Assembly: GCA_965112735.1 (NCBI GenBank)
Contig: OZ218963.1
Span: 1,302,001-1,366,000, forward strand
Reading direction: 5' to 3'
Length of the DNA stretch: 64,000 nucleotides
Source of the DNA: Phaeosaccion multiseriatum
Lineage: Eukaryota > Protista > Ochrophyta, other classes
Notes under the pieces: model-generated
The model's database searches: none
The model's input: only the letters and a program-made list of their open reading frames with translations
Told to the model about the DNA's origin: nothing
Shown here: positions 253 to 57,259 of the stretch, one piece after another
Layout: every line of letters starts with the position of its first letter
Position numbering within the stretch: position 1 is the stretch's first letter
Translations under genes and position numbers: made by a program

Positions 253-405
253 TTGAGTGAGAGTGGCGGTGTGCATGTTGCGAGTGAGTGTGTGTGTGAG
301 TGAGTGAGTGAGTGAGTGAGTGAGTGAGTGGGTGGGCGAGGTGTGAGTGAGTGAGTGAGTGAGTGGGTGGGTGAGGTGTGAGTGTGTGTGTGCATGTGCG
401 TGTGG
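253..405. repeat. (GAGT)n/(GT)n microsatellite
   Basis: Directly visible tandem GAGT and GT units. Confidence 0.9.
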
Positions 406-779
406 GCACGTGTGCAACAGCGCGTATGTAGTACATGGAGATGAGGGCGAGGTTAGCGAATATCTAAAGTACAATTTTTAGCCATTGATATTCTCCTTAA
501 CATGAGAGCTAAGTAGGGGGGGGGGGGGGGGGTGTCGTAAAGCTGTGAGGCTCTTGCCTCGGGATGGAATACTTCGATAAGTCAACAAACAACGCGACGG
601 CCCCCGACACGAGAAAGGAAGGAGGAACGGTACCGCTCCAAACGCCAAGGCCAAAGCCCACAGCCCAAAGGCCAAGACCACAGGCTCAAGGCCAAGGTGA
701 CGGCCCGGCCACCCCTCTCCTCCCCACCGCCTACCGTACCCACCCCCCCCCCCACCTCCTCCACTACTACATCGTACCA

Positions 780-3700
780 CTACTTTTCACCCCCATGCTC
801 TGGCCTGTGCGTGAATTCCCAATCCAGATGCACAAAGGCTCTCTCCACCGCCTCCAGCTTCTCAATGCGAAACTGTAGACTCTCTCCAATGTCGTGTGCT
901 TCCCTCAGTGGCATACCCTCCGGCAGCACAATGTCGACCTCGACGAGAAACATCGGGCCGAAGTGATAGGCCCGTACTGTATCCACGTATTGAATGCGAT
1001 CGTCGTGGCTGATCACCATGTAGGTAATCTGTTGCAGGAAGTGGGCGTCGGCAGTTCGGCCGACGATGGTGTGTGTCTCGCTGACAGCGGTCCGCCCCCA
1101 AATGATGATGATGTAGCAGGCAATGGCGATGCCTCCGATGGGGTCAACGTACCAGAGGGCAGGCACCGTGCCGCTCACCACCAGACCACAGGCACCCACA
1201 ACGTTCATGAGCACGTCGTTCCAATGATCCTGACCACAGCAGAGAGCAGGAGAAGGCGTGGGTAGGAAAGACAAGAGGGGGAGAGAGAGGGACAGAGAGA
1301 GAGAGACAGAGAGAGACAGAGAGAGAGAGATTTTGAGTCGGCGCTGTTCTCTGCTAATCGGAGAGGGAGGGAGGAGTGGGCGCTCAGAGCAATCAAGAGG
1401 GTTTTGCTTTGCTTTGCTTTGCTCTGCTCTGCGCTGCCCTTCATCGCTTTGCTCTACTCTGCTTCACGTCGCTTCGCTTCGCTTTCTCTCTCGTCTCTCG
1501 TCTCTCTCTCTCACTCTCCCACCTTTACATACACATCCCCATATACCTGAGCAAAGGCTTGAACGGAGGAGCTGCCTGTGAGGCGCCCCACCTTGCGACA
1601 GTACACGAACAGCAGCAGCTTGGTGGCGATGATGCACGCCGTCATGACCTTCACCTTGAAGCTGAACGCCACGAACACCACGTCCCCTTGAAACCCCGTC
1701 GTGAGCCTAGTAAGTAGTGAGGGACCGATGAGGTGCACAAGCAATAGCAGGAGGAGAAGGGGGGTGGGGAATACGCATTGACTCGCTTACGCACACACTC
1801 GCCTATTACTCCTTCGCTCTCTCTCACTCTCTCTCTCTCTCTCTCTCTCAGTCCTTCTCACCCACTCTCGCTCTTCCTCACTCACTCTCTCACGAGCCTG
1901 CTCTCTCACATATTCATACTCACCCACACAAGTGCGCTCTGTCGCTCACTCACTCACTCACTCACTCACTCAATGACTGTCCCACACTCTCGCTCCACTA
2001 CAACTACTCTCTCTCTCTCTCTCTCTCAAACACACACAACCACTAACCTCCGGGCACTGCTAACAAACACCTGCAGTGCTGCACTCCCCATTATCATCGC
2101 AAAGATGATCACCCCCACAGGCTCCAGTCTAGATTTGCCCACTGATACGAAACGGCAGGACGAGCAAACGGAGGACGGGGGAGGTGACACAGGAGGACGG
2201 GTGGGAGCTCTCTCTTCTCAGTTTCAGTTTGATTGCCACACCCCCCGGAAGAGTGTGAGCAAGTTCCACAAAATGGAGAACACGCACGCACACATCCACA
2301 CCTGCACCCGCACACACACACACACACACCTACACATACGCACACACATACACACACATACATACACACACACATACACACACGTACACACGTACACACC
2401 TGGATACTCCCCTCTGAGATCTTGTCGCTCCTTTAGAAAGTCTACCACTGTAGAGCACGAGGGGAAGTACAGTGGTGATAGTGAGTGAGTGAGTGCAGTG
2501 AGTGCAGTGAGTGAGTGAGTGAGTGAGTGAGTGAGTGAGTGAGTGGGTGGGCGGGTGAGTGAGTGAGGAGGAGAGAAAAAGGGGAAGAACGATGGGCGTG
2601 GGGGGAGTGAGGGACAGCACGAGGGGAAAGAGGGTCAGTGACAAGTCGCCCCAATGCCTCCAAATGCCTCCGAAAGAGGGTCAGTGACAAGTCGCCCCAA
2701 TGCCTCCAAATGCCTCCGAAAGAGGGTCAGTGACAAGTCGCCCCAATGCCTCCAAATGCCTCCGAAAGAGGGTCAGTGACAAGTCGCCCCAATGCCTCCA
2801 AATGCCTCCAGCAGATAGCGCAACGTTGCAGCACGTAAAGGGCCTGCACACAAGCGAGGCGAGTCATTCTTTCCCCCACCCAGCGCTTGCTGTAGGCCCA
2901 GTGGTCCATCCTCCGCCACGAGACGTTATATCCTCACTGGCGCGTGTGTAGGGCTCACTCCACGGCTTGTCATCCATCTGTTTATCTGTCTATCTATCCA
3001 TCAATGTATTTATCTGTCAGTCTTTCCTTGTCTATCAATCAATCAATCAATCAATCAATTATCTATCTATCCATCCATCGATCTATTTATGTATATGAAT
3101 CCATCTATCTATCTATCTATCCCAATATTCTCTGCAAACGATCCGCCACACGTACGCACCATACAGAATGAAGCCACTCACGAGGTCCAAAACCGAATCC
3201 AGCAGCGACGCCAACACCGCCATTGACATGGAGCACCACATATTGACTCCATTCACCACCACCAGCACGAGGTTGGCCAGGAAGCTCACGCGCAAGGCAA
3301 GGCTTGCGGCACGAGTCTTCTCTGTCGCATTGAGCACGAGCTTCTCTAAGGGCTGCAGAGGGCAGAATGGGCCGGGAGGGGGGGGTGGCGATTCGATGAC
3401 GACAAGCAGAGAAGGATGGGTGGGGATTTGGTTGAGGAGGTTATACGAGAGATCAAGACAAGCAGAGAAGGATGGGTGGGGATTTGGTTGAGGAGGTTAT
3501 ACGAGAGATCAAGACAAGCAGAGAAGGATGGGTGGGGATTTGGTTGAGGAGGTTATACGAGAGATAAAGATGAGCGCTGGGTGTGGTGTGTGCACCTTAA
3601 GCGGGCGGGTACGAGAAATGCTGGAGCTACTACCATAGAGAGAGAGAGCTTCTCAATCTACTATAGAGAGAGCTGCTCAATGTACTAAAGATAGAGAGAG

Positions 3701-25100: not shown

Positions 25101-25714
25101 TTGGCCTGATTCGGCAGCAGCTCCCCATTAGACCATTAATCTACAGCGGGCACTAGACCATTGATCTACAGCGGGCATCTCTCGGGGAGGGAGAGCCCAT
25201 AGCTACGGTACCCTGCCTGCTTCGGGGCACCATGCCTGCCACTCAAGCAGTGACCACACTGGGCTGGGGACTCATGGGGGTTGCTTCTCACGGACGCCGC
25301 TAGTACACGGAGCATATTGATACCACTGATGGGTCCTATTGGAAAGCTCAACACATCATGGTACACAGTATAGCACTAGGAGTAGCCTAGTCATTGATAT
25401 CATAGTCATTAGCAACCGATCAACCTACCGAGCAAGTTCGCTCTACGTCATACACTCACTCACTCACTCGCTCGCTCACTGAGAGGAACTGCCACCTCCT
25501 CCCGTCGCTGCTGCTTCTCCTGCAGCAGCTGGTGGTACAGCAGTTGGTGGTACAGCAGCTGCCCTGCCGCCTCAAATCGGAAAACTTCTCCTCGCTCCCC
25601 CCGCCGATGAGCATCAACCCGCTGCCATCTCCTGCCGTCCGCTGCCACCCCCTACCTTCCACTACCGTCCACTACACGCCACTGCCACCCACTAAAATAT
25701 ACACTCCTTCCCTC

Positions 25715-27935
25715 TTCCCTCCCTCCCTCCCTCCCTCCCACCCCCCCTCCTCCCTCCTTCCCTCCCTCCCTCCCTCCCTCCCTCCCTCCCTCCCTCCCTC
25801 TCTCCCTCCCTCCATCCCTCCCTCCCTCCCTCCCTCCCTCCCTCCCTCCCTCCTTCCTTACGTCCCTCACATCTTCCTTCCTTCCCCCCCTCCCTCCCTC
25901 CCTCCCTCCCTCCCTTCTTCCTTCCTTCCTCCCTCCTTCCTTCCCCCCCTCCCTCCCTCCCTCCCTCCCTCCCTTCTTCCTTCCTTCCTCCCTCCTTCCT
26001 TCCTTCCCGTGTTCCTTTCTTCCTTCCCTCTCTCCCTCCCTCCCTGCCTCCCTCCTTCCTTCCCTCCCTCCCTCCCTCCCTCCCTCCCTCCCTCCCTCCC
26101 TCCCTCCCTCCCTCCCTCCCTCCCTCCCTCCCTCCCTCCCTCCCTCCCTCCCTCCCTCCCTCCCTCCCTCCCTCCCTCCCTCCCTCCCTCCCTCCCTCCC
26201 TCCCTCCCTCCCTCCCTCCCTCCCTCCCTCCCTCCCTCCCTCCCTCCCTCCCTCCCTCCCTCCCTCCCTCCCTCCCTCCCTCCCTCCCTCCCTCCCTCCC
26301 TCCCTCCCTCCCTCCCTCCCTCCCTCCCTCCCTCCCTCCCTCCCTCCCTCCCTCCCTCCCTCCCTCCCTCCCTCCCTCCCTCCCTCCCTCCCTCCCTCCC
26401 TCCCTCCCTCCCTCCCTCCCTCCCTCCCTCCCTCCCTCCCTCCCTCCCTCCCTCCCTCCCTCCCTCCCTCCCTCCCTCCCTCCCTCCCTCCCTCCCTCCC
26501 TCCCTCCCTCCCTCCCTCCCTCCCTCCCTCCCTCCCTCCCTCCCTCCCTCCCTCCCTCCCTCCCTCCCTCCCTCCCTCCCTCCCTCCCTCCCTCCCTCCC
26601 TCCCTCCCTCCCTCCCTCCCTCCCTCCCTCCCTCCCTCCCTCCCTCCCTCCCTCCCTCCCTCCCTCCCTCCCTCCCTCCCTCCCTCCCTCCCTCCCTCCC
26701 TCCCTCCCTCCCTCCCTCCCTCCCTCCCTCCCTCCCTCCCTCCCTCCCTCCCTCCCTCCCTCCCTCCCTCCCTCCCTCCCTCCCTCCCTCCCTCCCTCCC
26801 TCCCTCCCTCCCTCCCTCCCTCCCTCCCTCCCTCCCTCCCTCCCTCCCTCCCTCCCTCCCTCCCTCCCTCCCTCCCTCCCTCCCTCCCTCCCTCCCTCCC
26901 TCCCTCCCTCCCCCCCTCCCTCCCTTCCTCCCTCCCTCCCTCCCTCCCTCCCTCCCTCCCTCCCTCCCCCTCCTTCCCTTCCTCCCTCCCTCCCTCCCTC
27001 CCTCTCTCCCTCCCTCCCTCTGCTACGATATAAGGCATCCCAATATGCCTTCAGTATTATCCAAACGTATTAAGGTAACAAAAGGTACCCTCCCTCCCTC
27101 CCTCCCTCCCTCCCTCCCTCCCTCCTTCACTACCTCCCTCCCTCCCTACCAACCTACCTACGTACCTCCCTCTCTCTGTCTCCCTCCCTCCCTACTACCT
27201 CTCTCTCTCTTTCTCCCAGCCTCCCTCCCTCCCTCCCTCCCTTCCTCCCTCCCTCCCTCCCTCCCTCCCTCCCTCCCTCCCTCCCTCCCTCCCTCCCTCC
27301 CTCCCTCCCTCCCTCCCTCCCTCCCTCCCTCCCTCCCTCCCTCCCTCCCTCCCTCCCTCCCTCCCTCCCTCCCTCCCTCCCTCCCTCCCTCCCTCCCTCC
27401 CTCCCTCCCTCCCTCCCTCCCTCCCTCCCTCCCTCCCTCCCTCCCTCCCTCCCTCCCTCCCTCCCTCCCTCCCTCCCTCCCTCCCTCCCTCCCTCCCTCC
27501 CTCCCTCCCTCCCTCCCTCCCTCCCTCCCTCCCTCCCTCCCTCCCTCCCTCCCTCCCTCCCTCCCTCCCTCCCTCCCTCCCTCCCTCCCTCCCTCCCTCC
27601 CTCCCTCCCTCCCTCCCTCCCTCCCTCCCTCCCTCCCTCCCTCCCTCCCTCCCTCCCTCCCTCCCTCCCTCCCTCCCTCCCTCCCTCCCTCCCTCCCTCC
27701 CTCCCTCCCTCCCTCCCTCCCTCCCTCCCTCCCTCCCTCCCTCCCTCCCTCCCTCCCTCCCTCCCTCCCTCCCTCCCTCCCTCCCTCCCTCCCTCCCTCC
27801 CTCCCTCCCTCCCTCCCTCCCTCCCTCCCTCCCTCCCTCCCTCCCTCCCTCCCTCCCTCCCTCCCTCCCTCCCTCCCTCCCTCCCTCCCTCCCTCCCTCC
27901 CTCCCTTCCTCCCAGCCTCCCTCCCTCCCTCCCTC
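25715..27935. repeat. Two very long (CCCT)n arrays separated by a ~67-bp AT-richer spacer (27021-27087)
   Basis: Near-perfect CCCT cores at about 26065-26910 and 27246-27905, with degenerate edges. Confidence 0.95.
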
Positions 27936-47432: not shown

Positions 47433-49226
47433 TCAGTCCTGGTGGGAAGAAGAGGCTCCCGCCAGCATGACGTCATCCACAAGGAGGCCGATGTCGCTGG
47501 CAGGCACGCCCAATAGCCCTGCTTGATACGGGATGGGGCGACGCGCACGGAACGGAACCGCAGGCAACAACAAGAGAGGGGAGATGAAAATGAGTGGCCG
47601 TGCGACAAGAGAGCAGTTCGAAGGCGGATGGAAAGGGCGGGGCGAGGCGAGGAGACACTTTAGCTCGACCCTCCCTTCCTTCTCAAGAAAAGGAGGACTT
47701 TCTTCGACCATGGAAAGAAAAGCGAAAAAAAGCCCAGCTTCTCCTCGTTTGTTCCCTTCTCTTCCCTCCTTCTCTCCTCCGGGCACGCTTCCGCCGAGAC
47801 CAACAGCATGCACTACGACCCCTCCTCTTCTTTCTCTCTCACCTTCCACGATGTCCCACGGAGTTCCGTTCTGAGATGCTCCACCACCCTCCCGTATCAT
47901 CCCCACGGCAGCCCCTCTCGCTTCCCGGGGGGGGGGGGCCTCTGGTCCTGCGGCGGCGGCTACTGCTGCTGCCCGTGCTGCTGCAGCTGCTGCAGCTGCC
48001 TTGTCGGAGCTACGGGAAGCTCTGGCGCCGGCTGCCCCGACTGCTGCCCCGGCCGCTACATTGACTTGCAGCACCAAGGAGAGCAAGTACACTCCTCCCA
48101 AAAGAGCCGCGCACAGATTGAAGGGGAAGGTGGCGTCCATCGGATAAGACAAGTCCCTTGAGGCGGCAAAGGCAAAGGCCGCTGTGCCCAACACCGGCCC
48201 TCCCACGTCGCCCACCAGCGCCGCCAGCTGTAGCAGCAGCACCATGCCACTCTTGCTGCCCTTGGTCCGTGCCGTGGCGCCCATGCTGCCGCCCCTGCTC
48301 GCGACGCCTTCGTTGGCACTCGTCGCACTGGCGCGCAGAGAAAGCTGCAGGAGCAGGGAGGCTCCAGACCTCGACAAGATGGTCGCACCGTGTAGCGAGG
48401 CCAGTGCTGCCAGCACACACGCCCACAGTGACCACCCCAGCGTGTCTTCCGCCCCACCGCTCGAAGAAGATGCGCGTCGGCGGCTTAACATCTGACGGTT
48501 ACAGGAGAAAGCAGAAAACACACGACGAAGCACACGTAACAGAGCGAGATGTAAAGGTTTGCCCCAGCGTGTGTGCGTGTGTGCGTGCGTGTACGCAAGG
48601 TATCAATAGGACCGGACCAGTCCAAGCCTCACGCACCTGTTGCACCTGATACAGGGCCAGCAGGACCACAATCTGCAGCCCGGCTCCGAGGCGGATGGCT
48701 CGCAGCGGCGATCGAAGAGGCAGACGCACCACCCTGGCTGGCAGGCAGGAGAAGACGCCGGCAAAGGCCACACCGGCCAGGGCCAGAGCCGGCCCGACTC
48801 TCTCGGGGCTGAAGCCCATGCCCCCGTCACTGATGGAGCTGAGCATCCACATGGGCAGTAGGGCCTCTAGTCCGGTCTGAACGGCGCAGCTCAAGACGTA
48901 CACCACCACCACAGTCACCAGCAGCGCTGCTCTGCCACCGCCATGGCAGGTGGAAGCCTCGCCCCCCCTCCTCCTCTTGCCTTTCTTCCCCTTCTCTGCG
49001 GCTGCCCTTCTGCTGTCTGGCAATACTCTAACCCTGCGCCCTCTCGAGAGGAACCCGCCACCTGAAGACGAGCAGCAGGAGCAGCACCACCAGTTACTGT
49101 CTCCCCCCACCCCCGCCCCTCCTCCTCTTCCTCCTCCTCCTCCGCCTCCGCCTCCGCCTCCACCCCCGCCCCTCCCTGACCGTGCTGCTGCTCCGGCGAC
49201 GATGCCACGAGCCATGCCCCCACCAT

Positions 49227-49257
<31 letters not shown>

Positions 49258-50763
49258 TTCAAGGTCAGGGTCACTTCTCTCCTCTCCAAGCAGGTCCGGC
49301 CGCGACCCTCTACCCTGTTTCCGATGCGCCGCCTGAATGGCCTCCACGATGGCCTGCTCCGTCTCTTGCTCCGTGTCCCTGCTTCTGCTCCATCCCGAGC
49401 CCCCTCCCCCTCCACCACCGCCCCTGCCCCAGCCCACGCCACCACTCCCAATGCTGCCCTTTGGACGCAAGGGTCTTGCGCGACCATCCGATGAATGTTC
49501 CATTTCTATCCCATCCTGTAGAGACCTTCTTCGTCGCCGCTTGTGCCCCCCTTCTCCATCCCCAGCCCCAGGGGGCGGGGGGCGCACCATGCCACCACCG
49601 TTGTCCTCCACCCCGCCAGCTTCGGCAGCCGCTCCAAACCGCACATCCTGTTGCCACCGTCCTTCTCCTCCCCCCCCCGCCGCCTCCCTCTCCTCGTCTT
49701 GTAGCACCCACATTTGCCGCGTTTCGTCATAGGTGAATTTGTTCTCCTCGCCCAGATTAGCAAGAGTGGGTCTCTTGCGCCCACCCAACCACAAGCGTAG
49801 GCTGGAGCCCCACCCTCCCCCCCGTTGCCCCCCGCCACTTGCTGTTTCTCCCCTCCGCGTCGGTGGGTGAGTGCCTCCGACTCCAGCCGACACAGAGGCG
49901 AGAGGCCCATTGCTGCTGCTAGCGCTACTGTTGTGTGCCACCACTGACGGTGGTGAGATTTGGACGTCCTCTGGACAAGCCTCGTCGTGCCCAGGCGGCT
50001 CTCCGATTTCCAATTGCTCCACCAGCTCTGTCAACCCCCTTTCCTCTGGCGCTTCCCCGAGCTTACACGTGGAGGTGCCCCCAAGCTCTTGGGGAATCTG
50101 TTCCAATGGAATCACTTCCAGCAAGGCAGGTAGGAAGTCCGTTCCACAAATCTTGAGCTGTGGATGCGTATGCACAGAAAGAACGCGTGGATTGGGGCGC
50201 AGACGGACGAAAGAGGGAGTAAGGAAAGCCTGAAATATGAAATGTTAAAAGCTGAGGTGGATCGCTGACTTGCAATCAATAACATCAATTCACCTGCCCC
50301 TTCTTGCCCTGTATCCTCCCTCTCCATGGCGTTCGTTTTCTACTCTCACCTTGGCCTTGGTATTGGCGGAAAGCACATTGGCGACAACTTTCCAGGAGCC
50401 GGCGAACCACCAAGGCGCATTTATGATGATGATCGCGCTTTGGCGGCCAGGGTAGTGGTTCTGCATAACCTCCGCAGTGGCCGATAGGTATGTCAGCATG
50501 ACCTGGACGGCAGCGCAAGGCAATGATGGGCACAAGAAGGTTACTGAGAGCAGGGCTGAGGGCGCACGCGACGACTCGAATTAAGTCAGGAGAGGTGAGG
50601 CACGCCAAGGGGGGTCAGCCAAAAGGGACGAATGCCAAATACCACACAGTTTCGTGTACTCTTCTTACCTTGTTGTTCCGCACGGTATTTAGCGTGAGCC
50701 CTTTCACATCCAAAACGGTCGCCAGCGTGTCATCTGGCACAACAAACGCACACAAGGGCGCGT

Positions 50764-50845
<82 letters not shown>

Positions 50846-52741
50846 GAGATGGAGAGAAAATGGGTCAAATGCCGTTCGAAGGGAGGGGAGGGAGTGTCTA
50901 GCAGCACAGTCACGCCCGGCCAAGCCTGAGTCTGAGGGAGATGACGTCACGCCCGGCCAAGCCTGAGTCTGAGGGAGATGGATGGGGTGTGGGGTGGAAG
51001 GACGCCGCACAGCACTCAGCACTCAATAGGGGTCAAAGGCGCTCTTTGTGAGCCTCCCACCCAACCTCCTCCCGCACCACTACAGTTCCGGCCGTACGTA
51101 CGTACAGTGCATGCAAACTGAAAGTAATGTAACGCTACGTACCATCGCCCATCGACAGCCGGGTCCATATGTACTCGTTGACAAAGGTGTAGTGCCGCTG
51201 CATTGCAGAGCCGTCCACCCCCAGCGCTGCGAGGCGACCGAACTGCATCCTCCCCGGGCTCTCGTAGCACACGATTTCTCCCTCCTGCAGCCGACATACA
51301 TGGGTCGAGCGAGAGAGCGTTACTCAGAGATTGTGAGACCAAGGCTAATTAATATAGAGTGTGAGCAACAGTATGTGTGGCTTGCAAAAGTGAGGGCAGC
51401 AACTTACACCCTTTCTCCGCTGCTGATACTGCTGCTGCTGCCGCTGCTGATGCTGATGCTGCATGCCACCTACCTTGGTTCTGCCATGCAAAAAGTGAGG
51501 GTAGCACTCCTTGATGAGGTGGAAATTGGGTTGCCTTTCTCGCAGCACGCGTCCCACTTTCATCTCCTCCTTCCAGCGGCAGGTCGCGTCCCACATAGCC
51601 TGGGCCTTGCGCTCTGACCGGCACGCCCGGAGGTACCGGCCCGGGGGGGTTGTTGGGCTAACCTGGGGGGTTGTTGGGCTAACCTGACCGTCCCCTGACT
51701 CGGTGGCCCCACCCCGCCCTTCTTCGAGACTTAGCAGAGGTACCGAGTCTGTAACTGCCCCTGCCCCTGCCCCTCCTGCTGCTGCTGCTGCTGCTGCTGC
51801 TCTTGAGCGAGACTGACGGGTAGTGGGGACTGGAAAAGCAATGACGACTGCAGAGATCAGCGCAGCAGTCAGGACGCAGACTAGAGCCACCGGCTTCCCG
51901 TCGAAGGCCGAGACGCCCCAAGTCTGTTGCCCGTGAAAGGAGGGGGAGAGGTGTAGAGGGGGGAGGGGAGGGAGGAGCAATTGGTTGGGGGGAGGTATTC
52001 TCGATAACGGCCCAGCTCAGGACAGGACAGGGTGGACACAGCAGCAACGAAAAGGCTACTCACCCACCCACCCACCCATGCATGTACGCACAGTCACAAA
52101 CGCACCTTCCTCCATAGAAGACCTCCCATCAAGGGCCCCGCCGCGAAGCCTATGAAGAACATGACGTGAGAACTCGCTCCCTCCACAGACGCCCCAGTGC
52201 CACCCGTCAGTGTATTACCTTTAGCACTGGAGCTTCCGGTCCGTCTTTCCTCCTCGCTGAAGCTGTTGCTGTTTCTGCTGCTGACGACACACTTACAGAG
52301 CAAGCTCGTGAGCGCCCCACTCAGGCTTCGTGCCAGGAGGAGGCCACCGGCGCTGTCTGCAAAGAGACCAAGCCATATCAGCAGCAGCGAGGTGGCGAGC
52401 ACAGCGCCCATGAGTAAGCCTCGGTGCGAAGGGAAGCGGGCCATGAAGGGCCAGCATACGTTGACCACTCCCCTTCCCGCCATGTAGCCGGCATACACGT
52501 GGCCCCATTGTCGCGCGACGAGAGCCCACTCCTCCGGGTCTCGCTGAGTCGCATCGATAGCCTCGTCGTCCTGAAGCTGCCCCTGTAGGTCTAAAGCGGC
52601 CTGCTCCTCCTGCTGCGGCATCGTGTCCAGCCCCAGGTACTCGTACAGCAAGAGAGGTCCAATCGGAAGGAGCATGGAGCGCACCAATGCGTCGCATAGC
52701 AGCGCCACGTTCAAGCTACTGCTCCTCCTGGCCCTGCCCAT
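47433..52741 (-). CDS. MFS (ZIFL/DHA1-like) transporter with a CRAL-TRIO/Sec14 domain and a Sec16-like motif in the central loop, multi-exon
   Basis: N-half: LLLARSLSG, GFAAGPLMGGLL. CRAL-TRIO: RYLRAC, YPHFLHGRTK, TVLDVKGL, MQNHYPGR..IINAPWWF..W, LLEVIPLEQIPQELGGT. C-half: LLPMWMLSSISDGGMGFSPERVG, GDVGGPVLGTAAFA. Confidence 0.82.
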
Positions 52742-53073
52742 CACTGGAGCAACCCTACAATTATGCAATTACTTTACACCCCATACCATCCAAGTTACCC
52801 GCGTGGCAAGTAAGGTGAGGTGTGAAGAAGAGGAAAACAGAGGTGGAAAGGTAAGGATAAGGAGGAGGCGAGTGGCGGTCGGCCGCGCGGGCCGGGGCCG
52901 GGCCGCCGAGGCGGCATTCATTGACTTAAACCTTCATCCTTTTCCTTTCCTTTCCATTCCTTCCTTTCACACATTCTCTGTTGTGAATATATGAATGAAA
53001 ATATGAACCACCCTCTCAGGGAGGCCGAGACAGGGAGATGTCCAGAAACGCCTTGGCCTGTCTGCGCCGATTT

Positions 53074-57259
<4,186 letters not shown>

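Follow-up and report, generated by a model that had tools for sequence, protein, structure and literature searches.

A conserved hairpin motif in the central loop of an ochrophyte MFS–Sec14 transporter family and its likeness to the Sec16 C-terminal tail

Results

An MFS transporter gene with an inserted Sec14 domain

The window, which is the whole 64,000-nucleotide stretch of DNA analyzed here, corresponds to C14:1302001-1366000 of the Phaeosaccion multiseriatum assembly (67 Mb, 22 contigs) that was also used for the genome-wide scans. The sequence is eukaryotic and GC-rich, and it contains introns and microsatellites. A (CTCC)n microsatellite at window 25704-27935 extends over 2.2 kb (~557 copies, 91% matches) with a local GC skew of −0.96. 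Shorter (CA)n/(GT)n runs at 50780-50860 and 53100-53200 lie in or beside the introns of the gene described below and appear as H-T-H-T or C-V-C-V in ORFs. Gene fragments next door, at 53270-54650 on the minus strand, resemble an AAA+ ATPase of the katanin/Vps4 type, as judged by eye only.

The gene of interest lies on the minus strand. Exon-wise Pfam matches and tblastn with orthologues gave the domain order MFS N-half, CRAL-TRIO, linker, and MFS C-half, and the Pfam matches of the exons were limited to MFS_1 and CRAL_TRIO. Its features, in the direction of the coding strand, are as follows:

52094..52768, minus strand: first exon, MFS N-terminal half (MFS_1, E 4e-5; tblastn)
51012..51893, minus strand: exons that complete the MFS N-half and encode the N-terminal portion of the Sec14/CRAL-TRIO domain (tblastn with P0001, P0074, and P0083; homology blocks 51468-51893 and 51120-51293, splice sites approximate)
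50290..50535, minus strand: CRAL-TRIO exon (PF00650, E 9e-13; tblastn)
48499..50175, minus strand: open frame of 558 codons, probably one long exon, with the CRAL-TRIO end, the Gly-rich linker, and TM7-TM8 of the MFS C-half
50011-50166, minus strand: C-terminal end of CRAL-TRIO (last ~55 residues), which starts the 558-aa frame
49768..49815, minus strand: basic/hydrophobic stretch G-W-x3-L-R-L-W-L-x2-R-K-R-P upstream of the core motif, a short helix in the orthologue model
49702..49773, minus strand: linker peptide under study, residues 135-158 of the 558-aa frame
49702-49761, minus strand: core motif A-N-L-G-E-E-N-K-F-T-Y-D-x5-W-V-L, a predicted β-hairpin of an F-x-Y-D strand and an x-W-V-L strand
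49324..49362, minus strand: second linker island (E)-x-x-I-V-x-A-I-Q-A-A-H, a modeled helix between the hairpin and TM7 (family consensus LAIQA)
from 48927, minus strand: TM7 of the MFS C-half in the 558-aa frame
48066..48434, minus strand: next exon, later TM helices of the MFS C-half (tblastn)

Together, the Sec14/CRAL-TRIO exons span 51893-50335 on the minus strand. Many long ORFs overlap in all frames around the gene, and the sequences searched were single open frames or orthologue proteins. The linker peptide had been singled out in an original prediction made from the DNA alone, which placed it in an island of complex sequence inside a Gly/Ser-rich linker and likened it to the C terminus of Sec16. 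Its position was borne out: the peptide reads from 49702-49773 in a minus-strand frame, and the surrounding translation (window 49669-49809, minus strand) is stop free. The description of its setting held in part, in that the island is complex and the 338-residue linker of the 558-aa frame is Gly-rich (25% Gly, 11% Ala, 11% Arg), but Ser, at 9%, is not dominant. The Sec16 central conserved domain (PF12932 and PF12931) is absent from the window-gene exons, and the orthologues give CRAL_TRIO and MFS-type matches; because this central domain is missing from the host, the window protein does not belong to the Sec16 family.

The linker motif is conserved across an algal transporter family

An exhaustive HMMER search of 1.84 billion representative sequences with the 558-aa frame yielded 95 relatives, many of them 800-1100 residues long with both CRAL_TRIO and MFS-type Pfam matches. 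All of the named relatives are from ochrophyte algae (Chromulina, Phaeomonas, and MMETSP transcriptomes), and the others are encoded on Tara and JGI metagenome contigs, several of which carry the gene as a single uninterrupted ORF. Neither an MFS transporter carrying an inserted Sec14 domain nor the hairpin motif was described in the papers searched, and strings of motif fragments returned no match. The MFS transporter with an inserted Sec14 domain and a hairpin in its central loop is a widespread, previously undescribed algal family.

With a motif HMM, the consensus A-x-L-G-x-E-N-x-F-x-Y-D-x5-W-V-L was detected in 38 of the 95 relatives, which together read A-[HYFN]-L-G-x-[EK]-N-x-[FY]-x-[YF]-[DN]-x5-W-[VI]-L. 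Retention in orthologous MFS-Sec14 fusions, on which the original prediction depended, is therefore what was found in these 38/95 proteins. The position is equally constant: in all 10 motif-positive relatives with both flanks located, the motif lies between the end of CRAL-TRIO and TM7. Relatives carry G-hydrophobic-hydrophobic-G-W-x-R-x-R before the motif and acidic residues after it, and in an extended alignment the upstream stretch reads G-hydrophobic-hydrophobic-G-W-x-R-x-R-hydrophobic. Most motif-bearing relatives also have the A-I-Q-A-A-H island, as does a paralogue encoded elsewhere in the same genome. Shuffled linkers gave 0.02 motif matches, against 13 seen. An ESM Atlas feature search with the motif segment scored ≤0.82 against unnamed clusters and was uninformative.

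A profile built from seven orthologues, none of them from this genome, had only two credible matches in the whole 67-Mb genome, the window site (53 bits, E 2e-12) and one on contig C11 (E 4e-6). The C11 paralogue (L006, G000:C11:2049584-2052679; ORF 946-2049, minus strand) has the same layout as the window gene: CRAL-TRIO end, linker, H-A-F-L-G-G-E-N-K-F-S-Y-D...W-V-L, L-A-I-Q-A-A-H, and MFS C-half. Its linker is acidic and Gly-rich and includes a run of ~25 glycines.

The motif is absent from 35 linker-spanning relatives with short linkers (the P0004-P0080 group; 55-113 residues, with one of 157), and a few others have a reduced Y-S-F-D-H-x2-Q-x-W-V form, which in P0031 and P0033 reads Y-S-F-D-H-x2-Q-K-W-V. 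A phylogeny of the 51 longest family members was built with FastTree and midpoint rooted; some of its branches are long. Motif presence required 3 changes on the tree, compared with 17 when the labels were shuffled. On this tree, all deeper branches carry the motif, and the proteins without it group in a single nested clade with good support, so the motif appears to have been present in the family ancestor and lost once.

The motif is predicted to form a hairpin in a disordered loop

An AlphaFold2 model was made for the transcript-derived orthologue P0001 from a 65-sequence alignment. Confident bundles of long helices, about six per side, surround a confident Sec14 fold that superposes on Sec14p, Sfh1, AtSFH5, and SPF (Foldseek E 5e-9 to 1e-7), with yeast Sec14p, Sfh1, and AtSFH5 being closest (E ~5e-9). 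Most of the linker (residues 483-671) falls below pLDDT 50, and it contains only three structured elements: a helix at 574-583, the hairpin, and a helix at 622-644 that corresponds to the A-I-Q-A-A-H island. In the hairpin, strands 600-603 and 608-611 pair F-V-Y-D with Q-W-V-L, and the block has a pLDDT of 57. Since the hairpin is at pLDDT ~57 with flanks below 50 and both domains are mostly above 90, the model shows the motif as a local hairpin with no confident packing against either domain. In MFS transporters generally, the loop between TM6 and TM7 faces the cytosol, and by analogy the hairpin-bearing loop is probably cytosolic.

The features of a docking motif are thus present: conserved residues in a low-complexity, low-pLDDT region with no packing on a domain, although the module is longer and more structured than a classical linear motif of 3-10 residues. 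Conservation, a disordered context, and a predicted free hairpin together argue that the peptide is a real, conserved docking-type motif.

Stramenopile Sec16 tails contain a similar predicted hairpin

The Sec16 of this genome was identified on contig C8 by its Pfam TPR_Sec16 match (L001, G000:C8:1229049-1232714; ORF 262-3321, plus strand). About 120 residues from the end of this 1019-residue frame lies Y-P-E-A-K-H-A-D-V-G-E-S-M-D-A-Y-Y-D-D-K-L-K-R-W-V-F-P, and the same element is found in a partial Sec16 from Laminaria digitata and in a metagenomic Sec16 relative (L004). These three tails, all of stramenopile type, were the ones compared, and their common pattern near the C terminus is P-E-A-x2-A-D-V/L-G-x2-M-x-A-Y-Y/W-D-x5-W-V-F-P. 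A Sec16 C-terminal motif with spacing and key residues like those of the transporter motif (A-x-V/L-G...Y-D-x5-W-V-hydrophobic) is therefore present in these three proteins. The plant and fungal Sec16 consensus, in the form quoted in the original prediction, may lie nearer to the transporter motif than the stramenopile Sec16 version does.

Sampling of Sec16 tails was extended with several searches. Word-index protein searches with the motif region or the central domain, with or without the tail, of this genome's Sec16 returned only one partial Laminaria protein, with Ala/Gly low-complexity words probably crowding out other candidates; a metagenome scan gave two Sec16-like loci, only one with the tail; and scans of viral and prokaryotic-genome collections found no Sec16 tails. 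No Pfam model covers the tail element. A second invariant island, N-D-P-L-A-A-L-M-A-P-P, occurs ~55 residues past the hairpin in L001 and in the Laminaria and metagenomic Sec16 proteins. AlphaFold2 folded a 58-residue segment of Sec16 into a hairpin (pLDDT ~70-76) between Y-Y-D and R-W-V, in the same register as the transporter hairpin.

The C-terminal conserved region of Sec16 binds Sec23, Sar1-GTP, and Sec12 (PMC3408419, PMC3275590, PMC4980449), so the literature agrees, for the region as a whole, with the proposed link to Sec23; our literature search found binding known for the whole region and none mapped to the hairpin itself. A published p115–Sec16A motif is N-terminal and vertebrate and was set aside as not relevant to the C-terminal hairpin.

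Profile comparison of the transporter and Sec16 motifs

The two motifs have in common A-x-(V/L)-G-x4-x-x-Y-D-x5-W-V-hydrophobic and similar flanks. The top-scoring domain of the transporter-motif HMM, built from 34 sequences, coincided exactly with the hairpin in each of the two full Sec16 proteins, at only 5.6 and 1.2 bits, and the Sec16 HMM, built from three sequences, aligned in register over at least 18 columns in 18 of the 38 motif-positive relatives, with 12 bits for the best orthologue (E 0.05 in a 15,000-protein space) and 4.7 bits for the window protein. With only three stramenopile-type Sec16 tails, plain HMM searches gave no significant match in either direction, and Sec16 was not retrieved by the genome-wide scan with the foreign-orthologue profile.

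Profile–profile alignment gave a stronger signal. Aligned motif to motif with hhalign, again with three stramenopile-type tails on the Sec16 side, the families matched in register with a score of 24.0 (P 2.6e-6, probability 89%), compared with 8.0 ± 2.3 for 300 column shuffles (maximum 18.4; 0/300 reached 24.0) and 8.8 for the reversed profile. Both halves contributed: the N-terminal half, in which A-x-hydrophobic-G is in register, scored 9.4 against 4.9 ± 1.3, and the C-terminal half scored 19.5 against 6.2 ± 1.9, with 0/150 shuffles reaching the observed score in each case. When the full 241-column Sec16 tail was aligned with the 817-column family alignment, the motif–motif match was the top alignment (P 0.003, probability 10%), and each motif was the best-matching segment of the other family. 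A joint transporter and Sec16 profile found only the three known loci in the 67-Mb genome, all three of which are part of the profile. Two weak extra genome matches, L016 and L020 (C8), are not the motif. The Sec16-profile test of the transporters put forward with the original prediction was accordingly divided, plain HMMs not being significant either way and the profile–profile comparison with three tails being significant. On these alignments, the evidence for kinship of the transporter peptide with the Sec16 tail is only suggestive.

The hairpin core recurs in other proteins

A degenerate DNA pattern for Y-Y-D-[DE]-K-x-K-R/S-W-V matched 13 sites in prokaryotic genomes (L021-L033) in proteins seemingly unrelated to Sec16, and so served as a negative control. 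Six are near-identical bacterial N termini that look, by eye, phage-integrase-like, and three bacterial proteins have a common S-G-F-A-P-Y...Y-Y-D-E-K-x-K-R-W-V context. Searching PDB sequences with the peptide, with the Sec16 tail, and with the motif profile turned up nothing significant and no solved complex; the best matches of the motif profile, at E 0.5-1.4, were V-Y-D-E-E-S-G-E-W-V in Pcf11 and Rrs1 and F-V-F-D-K-T-S-Q-S-W-V in RanBP3. Y-Y-D-E-K-x-K-R/S-W-V appears to be a favored hairpin sequence. Because this core recurs in unrelated proteins, the stronger half of the Sec16 match is a generic hairpin sequence.

Discussion

The linker module can be set beside several known systems. Sec14/CRAL-TRIO proteins with added modules, such as yeast Sec14p and Sfh1, plant AtSFH5, and human SEC14L/SPF, have the lipid-binding fold seen in the orthologue model; here, however, the domain interrupts a 12-TM MFS transporter at its central loop, and the hairpin module comes after it. 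A close parallel to that module is the C-terminal conserved region of Sec16 (CTCD/CTR), likewise a short conserved island in disorder, with matching spacing and key residues and a predicted two-strand hairpin preceded by a basic amphipathic stretch and followed by acidic residues. The two differ in that Sec16 has x-M-x-A where the transporter has E-N-x-F, and the P-E-A and F-P flanks are found in Sec16 only; Sec23, Sar1, and Sec12 binding is known for the whole Sec16 region, and the transporter is likened to it by sequence and predicted hairpin.

Known linear motifs that bind Sec23 include the proline-rich PPP motifs of Sec31 and of TANGO1/cTAGE5 and the Sec31 active fragment, which dock on the inner COPII coat. 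Like the linker module they are short elements in disorder, but they are proline-rich or W-N-type extended peptides and are without sequence likeness to the Y-D...W-V hairpin. The first β-hairpin of EVH1/WH1 and Ran-binding (PH-like) domains has a similar hydrophobic-x-aromatic-D-x5-W-V arrangement, a RanBP3 chain being among the top, nonsignificant PDB matches; those hairpins belong to a β-sandwich of ~110 residues, whereas the transporter has two strands with disordered flanks. An EVH1/RanBD PH-like domain was ruled out on the grounds that there are two strands only, flanks below pLDDT 50, and no Pfam match.

We propose that a short basic amphipathic helix, the β-hairpin, and an acidic tail would make up a module of ~45 residues in the disordered TM6-TM7 loop of an ochrophyte-specific MFS transporter, immediately after its Sec14/CRAL-TRIO domain, and that the module most likely serves for docking, either by recruiting a soluble partner or by directing the transporter itself to a site. 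The lead candidate partner would be whatever the Sec16 C-terminal hairpin binds at ER exit sites, either Sec23-Sar1 or Sec12, and a module that bound one of these could place the transporter at ER exit sites or tune COPII assembly. The parts of this proposal differ in strength. That the module binds in trans is probable. That its partner is COPII or ER-exit-site machinery, in common with the Sec16 tail, is plausible but less likely than not, and that the module truly reproduces the function of the Sec16 C-terminal hairpin and stations a lipid-sensing transporter at ER exit sites is doubtful. As a whole explanation, a conserved docking module of ~45 residues that recruits a soluble partner or the transporter itself, with the partner of the Sec16 hairpin as the lead, has about an even chance of being right. 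COPII cargo normally binds Sec24 rather than Sec23, which counts against Sec23 as the partner. The original prediction was that the transporter may engage COPII directly; we would put it no more strongly, because the plain HMM matches are not significant, the hairpin core recurs elsewhere, and the literature does not map binding to the hairpin.

The principal competing account is that the likeness to Sec16 is convergent, with the Y-D...W-V hairpin being a common stable solution that serves in the transporter as a docking or oligomerization element whose partner has nothing to do with COPII. Occurrence of the core in unrelated bacterial proteins and of close variants in PDB chains of Pcf11, Rrs1, and RanBP3 is what this account would lead one to expect, as are the nonsignificant HMM matches between the two families and the divergence at family-specific positions, L-G-x-E-N-x-F in the transporter against V-G-x2-M-x-A in Sec16. 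It explains less well why the N-terminal half, outside the generic core, adds its own hhalign signal, beyond all 150 shuffles, and why the flanks are alike in both families, basic and amphipathic before and acidic after; the joint profile also matches only three loci in 67 Mb, although all three are in the profile. We regard convergence as a serious possibility that falls somewhat short of an even chance.

Two further accounts dispense with an outside partner. The hairpin might act as an intramolecular latch, folding against either the lipid gate of Sec14 or the cytosolic side of the MFS domain and so coupling lipid occupancy to transport, and its location between the two domains, together with its retention alongside the A-I-Q-A-A-H helix just before TM7, fits such a role; yet the 65-sequence AlphaFold2 model, with its low-confidence hairpin and flanks between confident domains, predicts no confident docking, and one clade works without the motif, making a latch improbable. 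Alternatively, the peptide could be functionless, a chance complex island or a piece of in-frame intron sequence in a genome rich in GC, as might be entertained where long ORFs overlap in all frames and splice sites are approximate. Conservation at the protein level in transcript-derived (MMETSP) orthologues, in apparently intron-free orthologues, and in the paralogue, along with the near absence of matches in shuffled linkers, leaves very little room for this account.

Even without the Sec16 link, a new algal family is defined that combines an MFS transporter, a Sec14 domain, and a docking hairpin in the central loop. Were the Sec16 link true, a single hairpin of ~20 residues would be a portable ER-exit-site address, and the partner-binding determinant of the essential Sec16 tail would be pinned to one hairpin and be directly testable. 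The transporter would then couple a Sec14 lipid sensor to COPII, and in heterokont algae ER export would be tied directly to the lipid status of membranes and to solute or lipid transport.
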